Origin: Vitrella brassicaformis CCMP3155
Taxonomy: Eukaryota; Protista; Chromerida
Reading direction: 5' to 3'
DNA length: 64,000 bases
Assembly: GCA_001179505.1 (NCBI GenBank)
Contig: CDMY01000242.1
Span: 62,001 to 126,000 of the forward strand
Shown: piece by piece, positions 4,881 to 16,410 of the stretch
How positions within the stretch are numbered: the stretch's first letter is position 1
How the letters are laid out: the number at the start of each line of letters is the position of its first letter
Program-made: the position numbers and the translations under genes
The notes under the pieces: model-generated
Database searches by the model: none
What the model was told of the DNA's origin: nothing
The model's input: the letters and a program-made list of their open reading frames with translations, nothing else

Positions 4881-6677
4881 TCAGCCGCTCCCCACCTGCA
4901 CACAGAACACATACAGCAGTGCTATCCACAGCCAGCCAGCCACATGTGCCCTCCGTTCCCCTCGCCCACCCACCTGCCACACTTCCATCTCATCGCTCGT
5001 GAAGTTGTTCGACCGCGCCAGTCTGCCGTTGCCGTGCTTATTGATCTCCCCTCTGTATCCATCGTGCAACAGATCTTTCTCGACCCACTGCTGGCATCTG
5101 CTGAGGTCGGCGGCCGGATCAGGACGACCATGGCCCAGCCAAAGGTAGCCGCGGCCGATGCAGACATTGGCGGTCGGCATGCCCTCGGTGTCCTTCACCA
5201 CCCCCTGTGTGCCGGCCACATTCACCTTCTGGTCCTCTGCGAGCAGCTCGATCTTGGTCGGCGCGTCATACGCACCCGACAGCGAAAAGAAGAAGACGGG
5301 CGCCTTGTACCAGTTGGCCTGCGTGGGGTCGTCTGGGGGGGTGATCTCGCCGTCGATGAAGGCGCCGAAGCGGTGCGTGTCGCCATCTCGGAGGGCGAAG
5401 AGCAGGCCGCTCTTGCCCTCGACGCACTCGAGCATCTTGGGGAACGCATACGTGTCGCGACTGCCCCTAAAAGGATGACACACCACAGACGACAGATGCA
5501 TGCCTTTTGTGGTCTGCCCTGCCTGTCTTGTGCCAGCATTCGGTCTCACTTGTACAGCAGCGATGGCGCCACGGCGATCTTCTTGTCGGTCATCTTCATC
5601 ACCGCCAGCCACTCGTCGGCCGTCCTGATCACTGCGGACGCCCCCGCCGCCTCACCGACAGGCGGCACCGTGTCGAGGCCGTACATGCCCAGCTCGACGG
5701 CAAAGATGGCCTTCTCGTGCGGCGCCACCACCGGCGGATGGACGAACCGGCCGGGCGGCATGACGACAGTCAGGCGGCGGGCAAAGTCGACGATGAGCTT
5801 CCTCATCAGACACGCTCAGCGTCATCACCTGGGTGTCCTCATCGCTGCTGTCCCGATTGACGAACGGCCGCATGGCCACCAGGAAGGCCTCCATGGCCTT
5901 CTTCTGCTTGCGAAGCCCCTCGAGCAGGCCCTCGTAGCGCCGCATGCACTGCTCCATCTGCCGAAAGCCTCTCTTTGCCCCGCCCTCCCCGCCACCATTT
6001 GCCGCCGTGCCAGTTGACTGTGGCTGATTCCCAATCTCGATGGCACCGCCCAGCGTCTGCATGAACAGCGAGTGGTACTCGGCATAAGAGGGATCGTCGG
6101 CCTCCGGTGAGTGCAGGCTGATCTCGTCCAAGTGAGGGCTCTCGAGCAGCGCCAGCTGGTCACGCAGCCATTTGAAGTAGGGCGGGTGCGCCTCGAGGAA
6201 TGGCAGGTCGTTGGTGTCCTTGGGCAGGGCGTCGATGAAGTGCAGCAGCAGGGTGGAGAGGTACGTCCGCTTCATCTTGGGATGGAGAAGTGCTGACAGG
6301 GGAATCGACATGACAGTGCCGCCCACATTGAGCCGAATGCGGTCCTCTGTCTGCAGCGGCTGCAGCGTGCCGCCATTTGCGACGAACAAGTGCTTGATCT
6401 GCTCCTCCAGCCGCTCCATCTCGCCCATCGCCTCGGTTGTCGCCGTCTTGGCCATCTCCCTGAGGTCGTCCATGCAGCCCGCAGCCTGCTTCAGCACCAG
6501 ATCTCCCTCCTCACGACCGCTTGTGAGGCTGTGCAGCTGCGACTCAAGTGGGGCGGCCGAGTCAAACTCATCGACAGGTGACGCAGATCCCAGGGCAGAT
6601 CCGCTTGGACGATCGTCGCGCCTTCGCTTCCTCGAGCCTCCAGAGGCTGACAGCATCGTGGCTAGCCGCTGAAACAT
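4881..6677 (-). pseudogene. BTB-TLDc protein, left-arm copy, frameshifted by an 83-nt deletion at 5797/5798
   Basis: Close paralog of 14577-16582 (RLNVGGTV..LPKDTN.LPFLEAHPPYF; GSRDTYAFPKMLECV TLDc). Reads DEE-AHRRL where the paralog reads DEE-VSVLRR..LQ-LIVDFARR. Confidence 0.7.
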
Positions 6678-8075
6678 GCCACCCTCTAATCATGCGAGCT
6701 CAAATTCAACCTGGCCGAACCTCGCCCTTCTCGATAAGAAAGAAAAAGCGACTCCATCGGTTCAGGTAACATATCTCCGGGAGGAAGAGCCCTCGAAGTG
6801 GCTGATCTGACGTTCCCTCCATCCTCTGCGTGTGCTGCTGTGTGATGACGTCACCCACGGTGTGGTGCTGGCTGCAGGCCACCGAGTAAGCAAGAGGATG
6901 ACGTCGGTTCGGATGTTGCTGGCGGGTTTGTTGGGCGTGTTGGCCGTGGGCCTGCTGGGCCTTCCCCTCACCCACGGCAAGAACCTCTACACCCAGGAGC
7001 TCCACGACGACAGTGAGGGATGGATGGGCGCGAGATCTATGGATCTGTGGATCTATGGATGTCGTGGAGGCTCTGTGTGTGGTGTGGATGGATGGATGGA
7101 TGCAGCGGACATAGAGGTGCCCATGGAGGAGCGCATGGACGCCATCAGTGATATCGATAACAACCCCAGTGCCTTCGTTGAGGCTGGTGCGCAGATAGAA
7201 GATGAGCCAATGCCGGCCCACCACCGCCACTCGACATCCGTGCCATTCCGTGGTCTGATGGATGTGTGCATATCTGTCTGTGCGTCTGTGTGTGTGCAGG
7301 GTCCTCGGCTGAGCTGTCATCGGGTGCCCATCTGCAGGTGTCGTTGGCCGCCATCCAACATCATCATCGCCATCCGACATCAAGCAGCTGGAGCGAGGCA
7401 AGGGCAGCCACAAGGCCGCCATAGCGGTGCACCAGGCTGCCATCGTCACACATCAAGAGGCCCTCAACGCCATGGAGGCCGCCGAGCGAAAGATGAACGC
7501 CCTCACCGACCAACCGACCAGCCGCGGTGTGGATGGATCATCGACATGTGTGTGGGTGTGGTGCATCTGTGTGTGTGTGTGTGTGTGTGCGTGTGTGGGT
7601 CAGGGAAGTGTGCGTACGGGTGTGACGGCTGGGACTACGAATGCAGGCCGTCACGCGATGGGGATAGTTGTGGCGTCGGCTGCAAGTGCTGGAAGAAAAG
7701 CTGCGTTGTGAGTACTGACACACTTTGACGACTGGCAGCAACAGACAGACAGAGAGACAGACAGACGCGAAGGATCTCTCTGTGTGTGTGTGGTCTTCAG
7801 GAAGAAGCCGACTACGAGGAGAACGCATGCAAGGAGGTCAAGATCATACACACACACACATGTCATTGTCTGTCTGTCTATGAGTGTGTCTGTGTGTCTG
7901 TGTGTGGGTGCAGGAGGAGCAACTGTGTCTGAAAAACAGCGACAAATGCAAAAAGGCCAAAAATGGGGCGAAGTGTGGCACCGGCTGCGCGTGCTGGGAC
8001 AAAAAGTGCATCGTGAGTACTGACACACTTTCTTTGACGACTGGCAGCAACAGACAGACAGACAGACGCTAAGGA

Positions 8076-8109
<34 letters not shown>

Positions 8110-8848
8110 TGTGTGGTCTCTCTGTGCGTGTGTGTGTGGTCTTCAGCATAAATCGATACACCCCAAATACAAGAAGGTCAAGCCACACACACACACATGT
8201 CATTGTATGTCTGTCTGTCAATCTGTGTGTCTGTGTGTGGGTGCAGGCTGACTGCCCGTGGATCCATGACTGAGGCGGTGAGAGCGCGTCTGGCGGCCGG
8301 CCCGGGCAGGTCGGTGAGAGACCACAAACAAACAAGACAGACAGACAGACCTCTATATATCAGCAGCGGCACATACATACAATACAGCATCAATCCAATC
8401 CGGCGTCTGTGCGTCTGTGCGTCTGTGTGTGCAGGTAGATATGTAGCTGTAGCTTACACACCGACGTGGCTAGGGAGGGGGAGAGAGAGGGGAGAGAGCA
8501 CTTTGCTTTGCTGACAGCATCAGACAGACACCTCACCTGTCCGGCTACACCATTTCTTTTCAGACGGGCGGGCGGGACACACACACACAGAGGGAGAGAG
8601 AGAGAGAGTTTGACACACACAGAGGAATTGGACACACAGGATTTTGCAATGTGTGTGTGTGTGTGATTTGGGTGATCCACCGTGTGTCTGGCTGTCTGCC
8701 TGTGTGGCTGCGCATCCAAGTGTGTGTCCATTGCGTCGGTGGAATGTCCTCTGATTGATGGACGGACCGATTCTTTGCGTGACGCCCTGTGTTCATCCGT
8801 TCAAGCGGTCCATACGGCGCCGACGAGTCAGTAGTTGAAGCGGTCGAC
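4970..8848. repeat. Left arm of a ~4 kb inverted segmental duplication (partner ~12339-16410)
   Basis: Reverse-complement identity seen directly, e.g. 6700-7020 vs 14200-14520 and 8280-8848 vs 12339-12930. The outer boundary is approximate because the TLDc 3' halves diverge. Confidence 0.9.
6898..8273 (+). CDS. Secreted Cys-rich (cystine-knot-like) peptide precursor, left copy, 8 exons; frameshifting insertion in exon 3
   Basis: Exons 6898-7012, 7106-7186, 7300-7526, 7604-7707, 7801-7836, 7914-8012, 8147-8176, 8247-8273. Signal peptide MTSVRMLLAGLLGVLAVGLLGLPLTHG. Cys modules CDGWDYECRPSRDGDSCGVGCKCWKKSC and CLKNSDKCKKAKNGAKCGTGCACWDKKC. Net +23 nt at 7356-7384 versus the paralog gives a TAG at 7422-7424 unless a cryptic intron is used. 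Confidence 0.72.
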
Positions 8849-9471
8849 AGTCGACCTATGTCTTTCCCAACACAAACCAATCCCCTCGGCCCGCCCACCA
8901 TCACACACACACACACAATAAAGCGGACGATCGTCCTCCTGCAGTGGTGAGCCTTTTGTCTGATGAAATGCCATTTCTCCTCAACACTCACTCAGTGACG
9001 GAACAACAGGCCGGCACCATCATCCCTGAGGCTGGCATGAAATTCGCTGCATCAGGAGCCTTGGCTGGCAACACACATACGCCCTTCCATGGTGCCCTTT
9101 CTATGGCTGAGTGCAGCTGCTTCAAGTTGCTGGCAGTGGCTCCACTGCATGAGGTGCGGCAATGATCTGAGCGATGGGGGAGAAAGGGGACCACCCTCGA
9201 TGAACAAACGATGCGATATAGGTGAGACAGACAGACATGGAATCGATGTGTCTGTCATGTGTGTCCACAGCCACGGACAGGCACATTCAATTTGCACACC
9301 ACACCCCCCGGGCCACACGGCGAGAGAATGAACGACACTCACAAGGATTCCCTCCAGCCGTACGTGGCCAATGAAACAAACTGGCCATCGTCTGTCCGTC
9401 TGTCTGTCTGTCTTTGATGAATGAAGGTCTCTGCCACACACCAATCCGATCCTCCCAAACCGCCAGCACCA

Positions 9472-12211
9472 TCACTCCCTCCCTCCGTGGCCTTCCTGGC
9501 CGCCATCTCCCTCCTGCTGCTGCTGCTGGTGCTGTGTGCGGGGCGATGCCGGTCCACCATCGGCCTGGGAGGGTCCACCCTGCTGCATCATGGCCGCCTT
9601 CTGCTGAATGGCCTGCTTCATCCCCAGGGCGTAGTAGTGGTACGGGTGCATGGTGGGCGACACGGCAGCTGTCGATCCGCCGTATGCAGCGGCAGCAGCG
9701 GCCGCGAAGGGGTGGTGCTGGTACACAGGGGGTGGGCCCGCAGACATCTGATAGACAGACATACAAACATGACAACACGCATAGCATAGCACAGCACAAG
9801 TCAGTCAAACTTTGTCCGTCTGCTGATGTGATGAGTCTCACCTGTGCAGCCTGCTGGTCTGTGCCCGCCTCGGGTATCCGATTTGACAGCCCCGATGCCG
9901 GCGAAGCAGCCGCAGCCGCAGCCGCAGAAGTCGCCATGCCGGGTGAGTGCCTCGCTGGCTGCCCCTCAGCCATCCCACCTGCCTCCTCCCCCGCCCCACC
10001 CAGCTGCTGCTGCTGCTGCTGCACCATGATGTTGAACATGTGCTGCCCACCTGCCAGGAAGGCCGCCATGGCAGGGGTGCTGTCATCCTGCTGCTGCTGC
10101 TGCTGCATGGGGGAGTGGGGCTTCATCATCGGAGGCATCACTGGCGGCCTCAGCAGAGGGCGGCCGGCACCTGGCGAGAACGGAAGACCGCCGGCAATGT
10201 GGGGACGGGGGGAGGCCGCTGCTGCTGCCGCGGCCTTTTCCTGCGGTGTGGAAGGCCTCTTGCGTGTGGTGCCGTCGTGTGGGGGTGTTTGGGGGGGCAT
10301 CATGGTGAGGATGCGAGCCTGCTCCATCCGCACCTGGGCCATCTCTTGCTGCGGGCACATTGACAGACAGCCGGGCACATTGACAGACAGACACGTAGAC
10401 AGACAGACAGACAGACAGAGAGGCGGTGAGAGGCAGGTTTGTTTCGTCTGGTGGTGAGTTGGCCGGGTGCGTGTGTCCAGTACGTACCTGTCTCTGCGCA
10501 GCGAGGTGGTCGACGGCTTGTTTGAATGAAGCGCAGTTGTGGTGGAGCCGCTTGAGCACCACACGGTAGTCCTGCACATACATAGCACAGAGAGACCACA
10601 CCACATCCACCCAAATGGGATGGGTGTGAGAGCGACAGTGTGCATCTCATGGCATCGCATGACATGAGGTCACTCTCACTTACCTCTAGCGTCATTGGGT
10701 GAGTGCAGTGCACCGACACCTCATGGCCCTCCTTGGCCACCTGGTGCACGGCCATACACAAACAAACCACATACATCGCAACCGCTTTCCTCCTCCTTGC
10801 GGGCTGGGCTTACGTCGCATGAGATGTTGGCCTCTCTCTGCGCGACGGCCATGATGAAGGGGATGGCGTGGCGGTCTTGAGCACCAGGCGCCTTGTCACG
10901 ATTCCTATTCACCTGATGGATGGATCGATGGATGGATGGATGTGCACACAGCAGTGAGGTGATTCAGTGCATGTGTTGCGTGTGTCTGAGAAAGAGAGAG
11001 TGTCTGTGCTCACAGCGACGAGTTGGTCGACGAGTCTGTCGATCTGCATGAGCTCCTGCAGCTTGGCCTTCTTCGTGTTGACCGCCTGCTGCAGCTCCAA
11101 CGCCTGCAACACGTGCATCATGATATCACGACACCACACACACACACACACACACACAGACACACACACACACACAGACACACAGACACACACAGATAAC
11201 GCACGCACACGCAGCCACGCTCAGGTGGGTCTCGTGCGCCCCACTTCTTTCTTGATTTCGACGGATGATCGGTCGCCGGGACTCTCGGAGATGCCCTGAT
11301 GGATGGATGGATGAGCCGAAGAACAGCCATATGGGCCACGGTATACATGCATCGGTGCTGGGTGGGGCGTGGGTGGGGCGTTGGTGTACCTGCCAGACGA
11401 GGTATTTGTTGGCCTTCCGCACCACCCCCAGGGCCAACAGCACATTCAACGCATCATACACACGACGACTGATGACACACAGACACACGGCAAAGACACA
11501 GCGTCAGGCGGACAATGCAGGTGTGTATGTCCAGTGGCAGCTTCCCTCGGCTGACCGTATGTTCTTCTCCTCCAAAGGCCGGTCCTTTGAACTCTGCGAA
11601 CCCTGCGCACGGCACACAACACAAGCCAACACGTCAATGTCTGTCACCCAATGAGTCGCCTCCGCTCTCTAGTTGGAATGTTGATCTGTACCTCCTGCAG
11701 TTCCATGGCGACGAGTGTATCCGCCACCTGGTTGAACGACGTCACGCCATGCTTCTTGACCTCCTCACACACCTGAGAATGCACCACAACACACCACAAC
11801 ACACCAGCGCCACACAAAGCGGATGATCTGATTTGTTCTCATGTTTTCTTCTCCTCTCACCCGCACACTGAAGTGTTTGAGTCCCTTGATGGCCTTGCGC
11901 CCCTCCTGGTCGGTCTCCCTCTCCCTCTCCCTCTCATCCACACGCCTCTTACTGCCGGACGAGGGCGTCAGATGCTGATACGCCACCGGCACGCCGCCAA
12001 GCGCAAACGGACTCACCTGTGGGGCCGCAGAGGCAGCAACCTGAGGGATCTGTGGTGCTGCTGATGCCGATGCTGATGTTGATGCGGCACTCGCATTGCT
12101 CTGCTGCTGCTGCATGCTTGGATGAGCACTGGTGGGCTGCTGTGGTGGATGAGCGGCGGAGTTGGGCACTCCGCTGGCACCTGGAGGTGCCGAAGCACCT
12201 GGCGGTATCAT
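9472..12211 (-). CDS. DP: E2F dimerisation partner (DP/TFDP family) transcription factor
   Basis: Spliced motifs [56 protein letters not shown] (DEF box), coiled coil LELQQAVNTKKAKLQEL, and DP-domain IPFIMAVA..ISCDVS; Q/A-rich tail. Confidence 0.88.
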
Positions 12212-12338
12212 GACTCAGGGGCCGACCGACCGTGAAACGTGAAACGAACGGTTTGGCGTTGGGGAAACGACCGAGCCTCTGCATCTCGAGTCTGCCGTCG
12301 AAACCATCCATTCACGCGAAACGAAGCGTGTAGTGTTG

Positions 12339-12586
12339 GTCGACCGCTAAGCTGCTCACTCGTCCGCACCGTATGGACCGCTTGAACGGATGAACACAGG
12401 GCGTCACGCAAAGAATCGGTCCGTCCATCAAAGGACATTCCACCGAGGCAATGGACACACACGTGGATGCGCAGCCACACAGGCAGACAGGCAGACAGCC
12501 AGACACACGGTGGATCACCCAAATCACACACACACACACACACACATTGCAAAATCCTGTGTGTCCAATTCCTCTGTGTGTCAAAT

Positions 12587-12619
<33 letters not shown>

Positions 12620-13063
12620 CCCGCCCGCCCGTCTGAAAAGAAATGGTGTAGCCGGACAGGTGAGGTGTCTGTCTGATGCTGTCAGCAAAAAGTAAAGTGC
12701 TCTCTCCCCTCTCTCTCTCTCCCTCTACCTAGCCACGTCGGTGTGTAGGCTACAGCTACATATCTACCTGCACACACAGACGCACAGACGCACAGACGCC
12801 GGATTGGATTGATGCTGTATAGTATGTCTGTGCCGCTGCTGATATATAGACAGAGGTCTGTCTGTCTGTCTTGTTTGTTTGTGGTCTCTCACCCACCTGC
12901 CCGGGCCGGCCGACGCGCTCGGCGCCTCAGGAATGGTATCAGTAATTGAACTTCTCCTGCACCCACACACAGACACAGACAGACAATGACAGACAGACAG
13001 ACAGACAATGACAGCTGGACCTGGTCCGTCCAGCTGTCGTACTCGTCTTCAGTCTGAAGACCA

Positions 13064-13097
<34 letters not shown>

Positions 13098-16000
13098 TCC
13101 TTAGCGTCTGTCTGTCTGTCTGTCTGTCTGTCGCTGCCAGTGATCAAAGTAAGTGTGTCAGTACTTACGATGCATTCCTTGAGCGGCCCTCCTTTGTTCG
13201 CTTATCTCCTGCACCCACACACAGACACACTCATTGACAGACAGACAATGACATGTGTGTGTGTGTGTGTGTGTGTGTATGGTCTTGACCTTCTCGTATT
13301 CGGGTCCAGGCTGAAGACCACACACACACACAGAGAGAGATCCTTCGCGTCTGTCTGTCTGTCTGTCGCTGCCAGTCGTCAAAGAAAGTGTGTACTCACG
13401 ATGCACTTCTTGTTCCAGCACTTGCAGCCGGTGCCACAACTCTTCCCATTTTTGGCCTTCTTTTTGCATTTGTCGTCGTTTTCCGAACACTGCTTACGGG
13501 CGAGTTCCTGCCAGCCAGTCAACCAATCACACACAGCCACGGGAATCTGTCTTCGTGTGTCTCCCTTGTATTTGCGTGTTACCTTTTCCAAGTATTTTTG
13601 GTATTTTAACTTCTCATCACCCATGCCCACCGACGTCGCCTCTGCACGCACACAAACACACACAGATACAGACAGATACACCGCACCCACACGTCGATGA
13701 TCATTGGTCGTTGGGTTACTTTTGAGTTTTTCGCTCTTAGGTGGGTCGGTGAGGGCGTTGATTTTTTGCTCGGCGGCCTCCATGGCGTTGAGGGCCTCTT
13801 GATGTGTGACGATGGCAGCCTGGTGCACCGCTATGGCGGCCTTGTGGCTGGCCGTGCCTCGCTCCAGCTGCTGCTGGATGGCGGCCAACGACACCTGCAG
13901 ATGGGTACCCGATGACAGCTCAGCCGAGGACCCTGCACACACACAGACGCACAGACAGATATGCACACATCCATCAGACCACGGAATGGCACGGATGTCG
14001 AGGAGCGGTGGTGGGCCGGCATTGGCTCATCTTCTATCTACGCACCAGCCTCAACGAAGGCACTGGGGTTGTTATTGATGTCATTGATGGCGTCCATGCG
14101 CTCCTCCATGGGCACCTCTATGTCCGCTGCAGCCATCCATCCATCCACACCACACACAGAGCCTCCACGACGTCCATAGATCCATAGATCTATCTAGCCA
14201 TCCCTCCCTCACTGTCGTCGTGGAACTCCTGGGTGTAGAGATTCTTGCCGTGGGTGAGGGGAAGGCCCAGCAGGCCCACGGCCAACACGCCCAACAAACC
14301 CGCCAGCAACATCCGAACCGACGTCATCCTCCCGCTTACTCGGTGGCTTGCAGCCAGCACCACACCGTGGCTGACGTCATCACACAGCAGCACAAACAGG
14401 GGGTGGAGGGAACGTCAGATCAGCCACTCCGAGGGCTATTCCTGCCCTAGATATATTACCTGAACCGATGGAGTCGCTTTTTCTTTCTTTTCGAAAAAAG
14501 GGCCAAAGTTCGGCCAGGTTGCAGGGGCGCCCTAACATCCGCTCGTGAAACGAAGGGTGAATCGGTACCTACACCGATGTCGGCCGCAGCCGCAGCGCCA
14601 GCTGGTTCGAAGAAGCGAAAAACCACCGTCGGCGAAGCGGCCGATGATGAGTCAGTCGTCCCCTCCCGGCTGCATGGCGTGACCAGCGGTCGTGAGGAGG
14701 TCGATGCGGTGGTGGAGCAGGCGGCAGGATGCATGGATGGCCTTCGTGGCGTGTTCAAGACGGCAGTAGCTGCGGCAGAGGGCGAAATCGAGCAGCTAGC
14801 GGCGGAGATCAACCAGCTCTTCATCGCAAATGGCGGCACGGTGGAGCCGCACAAGACCAGCGGCAAGCTCAAGCTCAACGTGGGCGGCACGGTCTTCTTC
14901 ATCTCAGTCCAGCGACTGCTTCAGCCCAAGATGAAGCTGACGTACCTCTCCACCTTGCTGCTGCACTTCATCGACGCCCTGCCCAAGGACACCAACAATC
15001 TGCCCTTCCTCGAGGCGCATCCGCCCTACTTCCACTGGCTGCGCGACCAGCTGGCGCTGCTCGAGAGCCCTCACCTCGACGAGATCAGCCTGCACTCACC
15101 GGAGGCCGACGATCCCTCATACTCGGAGTACCATTCGCTGTTCATGCAGAAGGTGGTCGGTGACATCGAGATGGAGGAGCAGCCGCGGGCGCCCGGCTCG
15201 TCGGCAGCAGCATCGGCAAATGGTGGCGGGGGAGGCGAGCAGCGGGATGTAGAGATGGCCGACGGGAGCGGCCAAGAGGGGCAGAGGGAGGGGGCGGACG
15301 GTGATGGCGGGGTGAAGAGGGTGTTTCGGCAGATAGATCGGCACATGCGGCGCTACGAGAGTCTGCTCGAGGGCCTGCAGAAGCAGAAGAAGGCCATGGA
15401 GGCCTTCCTGGCGGCGATGCGGCCGTTTGTCAATCGGGACAGCAGCGGTGAGGATCTCGAGGTGATGACGCTGAGCGTGTCTGATGAGGAAGTGTCGGTC
15501 CTCCGCCGCACCATTGTCCTCCTCGGCCAAGACCATGTGCTTGTGACGCGGTTCGACCGCGCGTCAGTCCTGCAGCTCATCGTCGACTTTGCCCGCCGCC
15601 TGACTGTCGTCATGCCGCCCGGCCAGTTCGTGCATCCGCCGGTGGTGGCGCCGCACGAGAAGGCCATCTTTGCCGTCGAGTTGGACATGTACGGCCTCGA
15701 CACGGTGCCGCCTGTCGGTGAGGCGGCGGGGGCGTCCGCTGTGATCAAGACGGCCGACGAGTGGCTGGCGGTGATGGAGATGACAGACAAGAAGATCGCA
15801 ACGGCGCCATCGCTGCTGTACAAGTGAGACCAAATGCTGACACAAGACAGGCAGAGCAGACCACAAGAGGCATGCATCTGTCGTCTGTGGTGTGTCATCT
15901 CTGTTAGGGGCAGTCGCGACACGTATGCGTTCCCCAAGATGCTCGAGTGCGTGGCCGGCAAGAGCGGCCTGCTCTTCGCCCTCAAAGAGGGCCACACACA

Positions 16001-16410
16001 CCGATTCGGCACCTTCATCGACGGCCCCATTACACCGCCTGCTGAGCCCACAGAGAACAACGGCTACTATGTGCCCGTCTTCTTCTTTTCGCTGTCCGGC
16101 GCGTACGATACGCCGACGAAGATCGAGATACCCGAGGAGAAGCAGAAGGTGACGGTGGCCGGCACACAGGGGGTGGTGAAGAACGACAGGGACGAGCCGC
16201 GTGCCAACGTGGCCATCGCTCGCGGGTGCCTATGGCTGGGATGCGCCAAGCCAGGTCCGGCGGCCGACATCAGCAGCTGCGTGCAGTGGATCGAGGGAGA
16301 CTGCCTGCCCGCGGGGTATGAGGGCGACATGGATGATGATGGCGATGGTTTCCTCGGTCAGTCGCTGGACTTGACAGCGAGCGAGATCGAAATATGGCAC
16401 ATTCAACAGG
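12339..16410. repeat. Right arm of the ~4 kb inverted segmental duplication
   Basis: Reverse complement of ~4970-8848; begins at gtcgaccgct (~12339), matching ~8848. Confidence 0.9.
12939..14327 (-). CDS. Secreted Cys-rich (cystine-knot-like) peptide precursor, right copy
   Basis: ATG 14327; exons 14213-14327, 14046-14126, then from 13932. Signal peptide identical to the left copy. One intact module CSENDDKCKKKAKNGKSCGTGCKCWNKKC, a degenerate 40-nt second-module exon, and terminal exon EKFNY* (12939-12956). Confidence 0.8.

Follow-up and report, generated by a model that had tools for sequence, protein, structure and literature searches.

The window analysed here is a stretch of 64,000 nucleotides from Vitrella brassicaformis CCMP3155 (C242:62001-126000, in full G000:C242:62001-126000), and the genome searched for related sequences comprises 72.7 Mb (72,700,666 bases, 1064 contigs). 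The window contains two paralogous genes, A (6898-8273, plus strand) and B (14327-12939, minus strand), which start with ATG codons at 6898 and 14327, respectively, and each of which lies in one arm of an inverted duplication. The arms (approximately 5134-8834 versus 12352-16240) are 81–96% complementary, and the duplication carrying A and B is recent. A third paralogue, C, is located 1.2 kb past the window end (L009:3210-4540, corresponding to G000:C242:127210-128540, with its ATG at C242:127210). The encoded layout is a signal peptide, an acidic stretch, a predicted helical stretch of about 70 residues, and then small cysteine-rich modules, each on its own exon. The exons of this cassette region have diverged several-fold faster than the introns that flank them and than the 5′ half of the same gene, with the six cysteines fixed.

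Three modules are intact: A1 and A2 in gene A, and B1 in gene B. Their cysteines are spaced C-x6-C-x8-C-x3-C-x-C-x4-C in A2 and C-x6-C-x9-C-x3-C-x-C-x4-C in B1, and A1 has an extra N-terminal cysteine (C-x3-C-x6-C-x8-C-x3-C-x-C-x4-C). All three (3/3) contain the motif G-C-x-C-W-x-x-x-C, and their net charges are +8 in B1, +4 in A2, and +1 in A1. The cysteine columns of the module alignment are invariant (6/6), compared with 5/27 of the other columns, 22/27 of which vary (p = 0.0004), a contrast that is overstated because the alignment is anchored on the cysteines. Upstream of the modules, the hydrophobic core of the signal peptide of A spans residues 6-23 (mean Kyte-Doolittle value 2.3), and the acidic region that follows the signal peptide in B has a net charge of -8. 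Judging from the sequence, this acidic stretch would argue against a plastid transit peptide. Starting with linker exon 1 in A and with B1 in B, the exons of the cassettes have phase 0-0; hence their gain, loss, or exchange leaves the frame unbroken.

The comparison of A with B gives 98% identity in exon 1, 93% in intron 1, 96% in exon 2, 97% in intron 2, 94% in exon 3, and 97% in the 3′ flank. Synonymous divergence (dS) is 0.033 in the 5′ coding part versus 0.38-0.80 in the modules. For a finer comparison, a cassette was defined as a module exon, the following intron, a linker exon, and the next intron, and six cassettes of about 300 nucleotides each were aligned with simple repeats masked. 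In pairwise comparisons, cassette exons were 42–73% identical versus 78–100% for the non-repeat introns, and the difference was significant in 14 of the 15 pairs (Fisher p 0.005 to 7e-11), the exception being the recent duplicates C1/C2. The collinear alignment of A with C shows the same alternation: 92% in intron 3, 77% in the module exon, 98% in the next intron, 61% in the linker exon, and 95% in the intron after it. Identity is only about 59–79% in the linker exons and in the 5′ half of each module exon, versus 92–100% in the introns that flank them.

Point change alone does not account for this pattern; much of the difference consists of gain, loss, and exchange or replacement of cassettes. 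Intron similarity groups the cassettes by position (A1, B1, and C1 at 96–100%; A2 with B2 at 94%), and exon similarity groups B1 with A2, unlike the B1 intron, which is closest to those of A1 and C1. This conflict indicates that recombination between cassettes produced mosaics. The ratio of nonsynonymous to synonymous divergence (dN/dS) in the modules is 0.59 for A2/B1, 0.64 for A1/B1, and 1.56 for A1/A2 (about 33 codons). Positive selection is not demonstrated, and synonymous sites are accelerated too.

The cassette introns of the cluster are packed with (CAGA)n and (GT)n. Simple repeats of the types (GGAT)n, (CAGA)n, and (GT)n, found at 7035-7111, 7728-7804, and 8652-8728, have a word depth 10-100 times that of their surroundings in all runs, and they are very common throughout the introns of the Vitrella genome. 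The hypothesis that the cassette introns are introners (mobile intron copies) was rejected, as their non-repeat sequence is confined to the six cassettes of the cluster.

The exons of A and B were placed by GT..AG boundaries (Table 1), and transcripts were found for both genes. The RNA contig X7#23 (338 nucleotides) joins 7458-7527, 7607-7707, 7801-7837, 7920-8012, and 8147-8176 with no differences, and the RNA joints from 7707 to 7801 and from 8176 to 8247 are both of the GT..AG type. Transcription and the modelled splicing are thus borne out by RNA for the 3′ half of A, where the two modules share a single frame. The joint between exons 1 and 2 of A (7012 to 7106, GT..AG) is present in the RNA-type contig X6#17. 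For B, the transcript contig L012 (1311 nucleotides, JGI sample 3300017297) covers exons 4-9 at 97–100% identity, the 40-nucleotide remnant included, and also carries one intron in the 5′ untranslated region (UTR) and one in the 3′ UTR. Its positions 1-54 are 100% identical to B 14513-14460 and 95% identical to A 6728-6765, and its next piece starts from 14374 in B and 6851 in A. The protein predicted from L012 (P0004) equals the B model, with an identical stop. The remnant exon shifts the frame of B, so that the protein stops two codons into the next exon and has 213 residues.

Table 1. Exons and other parts of genes A and B, with positions counted from the first letter of the window.
Feature	Position	Strand	Remarks
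Gene A, probable 5′ UTR exon	6728..6765	+	homology to that of B, which is in transcript contig L012
Gene A, exon 1	6898..7012	+	start codon, signal peptide, beginning of acidic region
Gene A, exon 2	7106..7186	+	acidic region; RNA joint 7185/6 to 7299/7300
Gene A, exon 3	7300..7526	+	helical region; contains A-specific 26-nucleotide stretch, ~7358-7383
Gene A, module exon A1	7604..7707	+	7 Cys; in RNA contig X7#23, 0 differences
Gene A, intron after A1	7708..7800	+	conserved cassette intron, of the type following a module exon
Gene A, linker exon 1	7801..7836	+	acidic, D-Y-E-E type, one Cys, phase 0-0; joint 7707 to 7801
Gene A, module exon A2	7914..8012	+	6 Cys, phase 0-0; X7#23 covers 7920-8012, then 8147
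Gene A, linker exon 2	8147..8176	+	basic; in X7#23, joint 8176 to 8247
Gene A, last coding exon	8247..8273	+	with stop codon; X7 contig 25
Gene B, exon 1	14213..14327	-	signal peptide, protein 97% identical to that of A
Gene B, exon 2	14046..14126	-	acidic region; 100% to L012 213-294
Gene B, exon 3	13720..13932	-	helical region, frame unbroken
Gene B, exon 4	13583..13641	-	B-specific extra exon, non-Cys; L012 530-596
Gene B, module exon B1	13400..13507	-	6 Cys; 100% to L012 587-696
Gene B, linker exon	13290..13310	-	read through by P0004
Gene B, 40-nucleotide remnant in second-module position	13169..13208	-	100% to L012 716-757
Gene B, former linker exon	13053-13021	-	spliced into mRNA, 3′ of stop
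Gene B, former last exon	12956-12939	-	spliced into mRNA, 3′ of stop

Frame integrity differs among the copies. Exon 3 of A has 26 nucleotides (approximately 7358-7383) where B and C have 3, a net insertion of 23 nucleotides that shifts the frame; with the acceptor at 7300, the frame of A from its ATG stops after 106 codons, upstream of the modules. Two spliced contigs, L012 and L014, carry the A-type insertion in an exon 3 that is connected to exon 2 through an acceptor of the 7300 type. The exon 3 of both contigs is a mosaic of A-, B-, and C-type sequence, with the insertion sitting within otherwise B-type or C-type sequence. Assembly across stretches common to the paralogues is the likely origin of this mosaicism, although the sequenced culture may conceivably contain a genuine hybrid copy; owing to the mosaicism, the two contigs do not prove the structure of the mRNA of A itself. 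In the public model of A (P0002), the frame is preserved by way of an internal acceptor at 7338; no RNA joint for this acceptor was found in four runs, but coverage there is zero in all four. The stretch 7343-7419, which includes the insertion, is uncovered by contigs of all four runs, the DNA-type ones included, and such a hole proves nothing. The donor of P0002 at 8005, which drops the last cysteine of A2, is contradicted by the X7#23 junction from 8012 to 8147. A 47-nucleotide mini-intron in A (7338-7384) would keep the frame too, and was set aside for want of a supporting joint.

In gene C, exon 1 is identical to that of A, and 12 nucleotides are deleted in frame from exon 2 and likewise from exon 3. 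Its two tandem module exons are near-identical to each other (97% and 38/39 in their two halves), and the frame set by exon 3 misses the cysteines of their 3′ halves and immediately afterwards runs into a stop. C is transcribed as well (contig L014, JGI 3300017297). A and C are thus transcribed yet frame-disrupted, and only B, with its 213 residues and one module, is plainly intact among the three clustered copies.

Beyond the cluster, relatives are few and distant. A genome search with the module protein found only A2, B1, and A1, and the degenerate pattern G-C-x-C-W-x3-C yielded, besides low-complexity noise, five sites in the 72.7-Mb genome, all in the C242 cluster. The signal-peptide exon retrieved A, B, C, and two distant copies, on contigs C459 (gene D) and C335 (gene E). 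Gene D (L010; P0001, 348 residues) has the signal peptide and the helical region followed by a different seven-cysteine C-terminal domain; homology of this domain to the module is not supported, as BLASTP gave no alignment. An assembly gap of Ns between poly-G runs (L010:3960-4290) lies directly 3′ of the stop of D. Gene E (L011) has the signal-peptide exon alone in common with the cluster. A further paralogue, F (P0005, 106 residues), is known from the transcript contig L013 alone (JGI 3300017297); the contig encodes the helical region, with no signal peptide or cysteine domain. D and F are more distant, unlinked relatives of the cluster.

Among 1.84 billion representative proteins, a helical-region profile matched only D, A, fragments of B and C, P0005, and, weakly, one coiled coil. 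The sole public label at the locus is ‘unnamed protein product [Vitrella brassicaformis CCMP3155]’. A homologue search with the module region of P0002 returned only P0002 itself, and a scan of JGI metagenome contigs with P0002 gave no relative, records of this genome possibly lying outside the scan. Pfam searches with the modules, the helical exon, the signal exon, and the full proteins produced sub-threshold noise only (DUF3934, DUF5387, DUF4175), and DUF5387 was found nowhere in the genome. Feature searches of the ESM Atlas with D and with the B module returned nothing. As far as is visible from these searches, the family is restricted to Vitrella.

The observation that an earlier note had made from the letters of this DNA is confirmed with corrections, and its interpretation is supported in part. 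It had described paralogues with a common 5′ part, introns, and 3′ flank and with divergent 3′ exons, which the coordinates and the identities of 94–98% in exons 1-3 confirm. The signal peptide, acidic region, and cysteine modules on separate exons are supported, as are the module spacing and the GCxCW motif in A1, A2, and B1, with the extra cysteine of A1 as an addition. The comparison of exon with intron divergence and the search for transcripts, both of which it had named as tests, came out in its favour, and the genome-wide count of family members placed the module at five sites, all in one cluster. The family is uncharacterised and lineage-restricted, as it had supposed. It spoke of two paralogues; both are real, but a third copy exists, B has one intact module, and A is frame-shifted. 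Its proposed link to apicomplexan effectors finds no backing, the profile search having given no relative outside Vitrella.

The main alternative to a reading of these genes as defence peptides, which is set out below, is that the orphan cluster is simply decaying. According to this alternative, recent duplicates are losing their function and leave residual transcripts, and the exon differences stem mainly from unequal crossing-over between near-identical introns, not from selection. The frame-shifting insertion in exon 3 of A, found in spliced RNA that uses the canonical acceptor, fits such a course, as do the two module exons of C outside the cysteine frame with a stop right after, the reduction of the second module of B to a short remnant, the end of F without a cysteine domain, dN/dS near 1, and the incongruent similarities of exons and introns, which indicate mosaics. 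However, neutral decay cannot make exons outpace the introns adjacent to them. The three in-frame modules retain all six cysteine codons, and even the shifted halves of C still have four; moreover, B is intact and transcribed, and the five 3′ exons of A are still open and spliced in one frame. Decay appears a somewhat unlikely explanation of the cluster.

Two patterns known from animal toxins are the nearest described phenomena. In the conotoxin precursor genes of Conus, the signal and pro parts are conserved, introns vary little among members of a family and contain many simple repeats, and most substitutions and indels fall in the exon of the cysteine-rich mature part (PMC3862624). The Vitrella genes resemble them in the low dS of the 5′ part versus the high dS of the modules and in their repeat-filled introns. 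Unlike Conus, Vitrella is a unicellular alga with no venom gland, and it has three clustered genes with five modules, not hundreds; its modules are repeated cassettes within one gene, 2/3 of the genes are frame-disrupted, and there is no sequence homology. The second pattern, the accelerated segment switch in exons (ASSET), concerns snake three-finger toxin genes, in which the introns of paralogues are highly similar and exon segments are replaced by very different sequence (PMC2474615). The module-exon 5′ halves and linkers of Vitrella, set between far more similar introns, recall this pattern. The fold, the organism, and the gene structure are different, whole small phase 0-0 exons act as cassettes, and part of the change in Vitrella is plainly cassette gain or loss.

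The boldest version of the likeness would be a venom-like diversification in a free-living photosynthetic relative of apicomplexans, with the exons of a secreted cationic disulfide peptide cassette switched or hypermutated between near-frozen introns in the manner of ASSET or conotoxins, a new knotted fold, and a role in microbial warfare; we consider it very unlikely. The proposal of a conotoxin-like diversifying family in the earlier note is not supported: the cluster has only three genes and five modules in all, the frame is broken in A and C, dN/dS is 0.59-1.56 on about 33 codons, and dS itself is raised. What stands of it is that the module exons are more divergent than the introns and the signal/pro exons, whereas the dN/dS values do not prove positive selection.

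The fold of the module was addressed by prediction. AlphaFold2 gave the 36-residue B1 module, with a three-sequence alignment, a mean predicted local distance difference test score (pLDDT) of 79, and the 113-residue fragment P0004, folded alone, reached pLDDT 85-93 in the ten-residue blocks over the module. Both models consist of two short helices (Cys1, Cys2) followed by three short strands (Cys3 to Cys6). In Foldseek searches against the PDB, the best matches (E 2.8-5.8) were disintegrin-like segments of ADAM22, ADAMTS-1, and snake-venom metalloproteinases, and none reached E ≤0.001; inhibitor cystine knot (ICK) toxins (1s6x, 1ixt, 1eyo, 2ll1) followed under these rows at E 4.3-9.6, together with one scorpion toxin. 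VIA-align returned nothing at Z ≥2. A shape search of the ESM Atlas gave ADAM proteins with template modelling (TM) scores by query of 0.64-0.66 over 29 residues (root-mean-square deviation 1.7-1.8 Å), values that mean little at so short a length. Small domains score poorly in structural searches. At the sequence level, Pfam at E up to 10 showed no knottin, toxin, squash, cyclotide, EGF, Disintegrin, or ADAM_CR family for A1, A2, or B1, and a profile search of PDB sequences gave nothing at E up to 10.

Membership in the squash, cyclotide, and EGF families was considered and rejected on the spacing of the cysteines as well as on the lack of Pfam matches. A squash-type inhibitor has C-x6-C-x5-C-x3-C-x-C-x5-C with its reactive site in loop 1, and the Vitrella modules have 8-9 residues in loop 2 and 4 in loop 5, with a loop 1 that is unconserved between modules. 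The loops of 6, 8-9, 3, 1, and 4 residues also deviate from the pattern of cyclotides, whose features include a conserved loop-1 Glu and an Asn/Asp at the C-terminus for cyclisation. An EGF-like domain shares the C-x-C at Cys4-Cys5 but continues with at least 8 residues up to Cys6, whereas Cys5-Cys6 and Cys3-Cys4 are only 4 and 3 residues apart in the modules. Disintegrin and ADAM cysteine-rich domains (PF00200, PF08516) were rejected because Pfam gave no match and the structural similarity covers only 17-29 residues at E >2.

One could suppose that each module folds into a genuine inhibitor cystine knot, in which the disulfides pair I-IV, II-V, and III-VI and the last of them threads the ring, and that it is released to serve as a mature protease inhibitor, channel toxin, or antimicrobial. 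Six cysteines in about 30 residues and a small predicted sheet of three short strands in the C-terminal half are shared with knottins such as squash inhibitors, cyclotides, and framework IX conotoxins, and the known ICK toxins among the weak Foldseek rows point in the same direction. Loops 1, 3, 4, and 5 fit the ICK consensus, and loops 3 to 5 have the lengths found in conotoxins of framework IX (P-superfamily), which are ICK peptides. Loop 2, usually of 3-6/8 residues in ICK peptides, is longer in Vitrella, helices are predicted for the N-terminal half, an unusual trait in a knottin, and neither a sequence family nor a significant structural match supports the assignment, the toxin rows lying at E 4-10 below the ADAM/ADAMTS segments. 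We regard released cystine knots as unlikely, and a knottin fold as such is neither shown nor excluded. The knottin fold put forward in the earlier note thus lacks a Pfam, PDB sequence, or significant structural match; of its structural expectations, the one that the module is not EGF-like stands, by spacing and Pfam.

The ADAM-type rows suit a different interpretation, namely a structural or adhesive extracellular protein in which an uncut helical stalk bears a cysteine-rich head in the cell wall, the sporangium, or the zoospore surface. The module would then be a generic disulfide-braced hairpin, as found at the end of the disintegrin-like and cysteine-rich regions of ADAM/ADAMTS proteins. 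The shape search and the top Foldseek rows (ADAMTS-1, snake-venom metalloproteinase, ADAM22) agree with it, as does the predicted continuous helix running into the module. All these matches, however, are non-significant and shorter than 30 residues, with no Disintegrin or ADAM_CR match in Pfam, and exon-specific acceleration and rapid copy turnover are unexpected for structural proteins. We consider a structural or adhesive role quite unlikely.

In each arm of the duplication, the cysteine-module gene stands head-to-head with a TLDc-domain gene. In the divergent neighbour of A (4884-6677, minus strand), the TLDc domain (PF07534) was detected in 4884-5612 at E = 7e-10 for TLD; a 341-residue open reading frame that starts at 6677 had no Pfam match. 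The starts of the cysteine-module gene and its TLDc neighbour are about 50-220 nucleotides apart, which makes a shared bidirectional promoter likely. Between the arms lies a central multi-exon gene on the minus strand (approximately 9400-12210).

The explanation that we favour, and offer tentatively at less than even confidence as a whole, is a young, Vitrella-only cluster of secretory cysteine-module genes with fast turnover and a defence-type function. Its descriptive core alone, i.e., the anatomy, the splicing, the restriction to Vitrella, and the divergence of the exons, is very probably correct. The proteins of A, B, and C type would enter the secretory pathway with zero to two six-cysteine modules and short linker exons between them. 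The module would form a small extracellular domain held together by disulfides, with a strongly cationic character in B1 and A2. Like many host-defence peptides, it would be made along with an anionic N-terminal stretch, and it might act at the surface of other cells in an antimicrobial or competitive role. The cluster itself would evolve by birth-and-death, combining cassette exchange with accelerated change of the exons.

The defence-type function is suggested by the charge pattern and the evolutionary behaviour. Host-defence precursors combine an anionic propiece with a cationic peptide, and multi-peptide precursors with acidic spacers exist. The acidic region (-8), the cationic modules (+4 to +8), and the acidic D/E-Y linker between the modules of A resemble this arrangement. 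Unlike such precursors, the Vitrella genes include a module, A1, that is not cationic. Taken by itself, this function, a secreted cationic peptide of the defence type whose N-terminal part is anionic, is our best guess but rather doubtful.

Several observations weigh against the favoured explanation. Module A1 is near-neutral in charge (+1), and no processing sites are established in the precursors. A simple cleaved propeptide is disfavoured by the AlphaFold helix, which continues from exon 4 of B to the first cysteine of the module. With the frame broken in two clustered genes out of three (A and C), decay fits as well as an arms race, and dN/dS values of 0.59-1.56 on about 33 codons are compatible with neutrality. 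Finally, the exon divergence may be overestimated if the compared cassettes are not orthologous; the B1 exon is closest to A2, its intron to those of A1 and C1.

Animal venom and immune-type genes are typified by exons that outpace the introns of the same gene, a pattern that to our knowledge has rarely been documented in unicellular algae. At the level of annotation, P0002 is a public gene model that disagrees with RNA at one splice junction. If selection or a targeted process is behind the pattern, the locus would be a small, tractable cluster for studying the diversification of cassette exons and may provide a new disulfide-rich peptide scaffold. If it is merely a decaying orphan cluster, it would still be a clean illustration, in a chromerid, of how very rapidly secreted orphan genes are born and lost.

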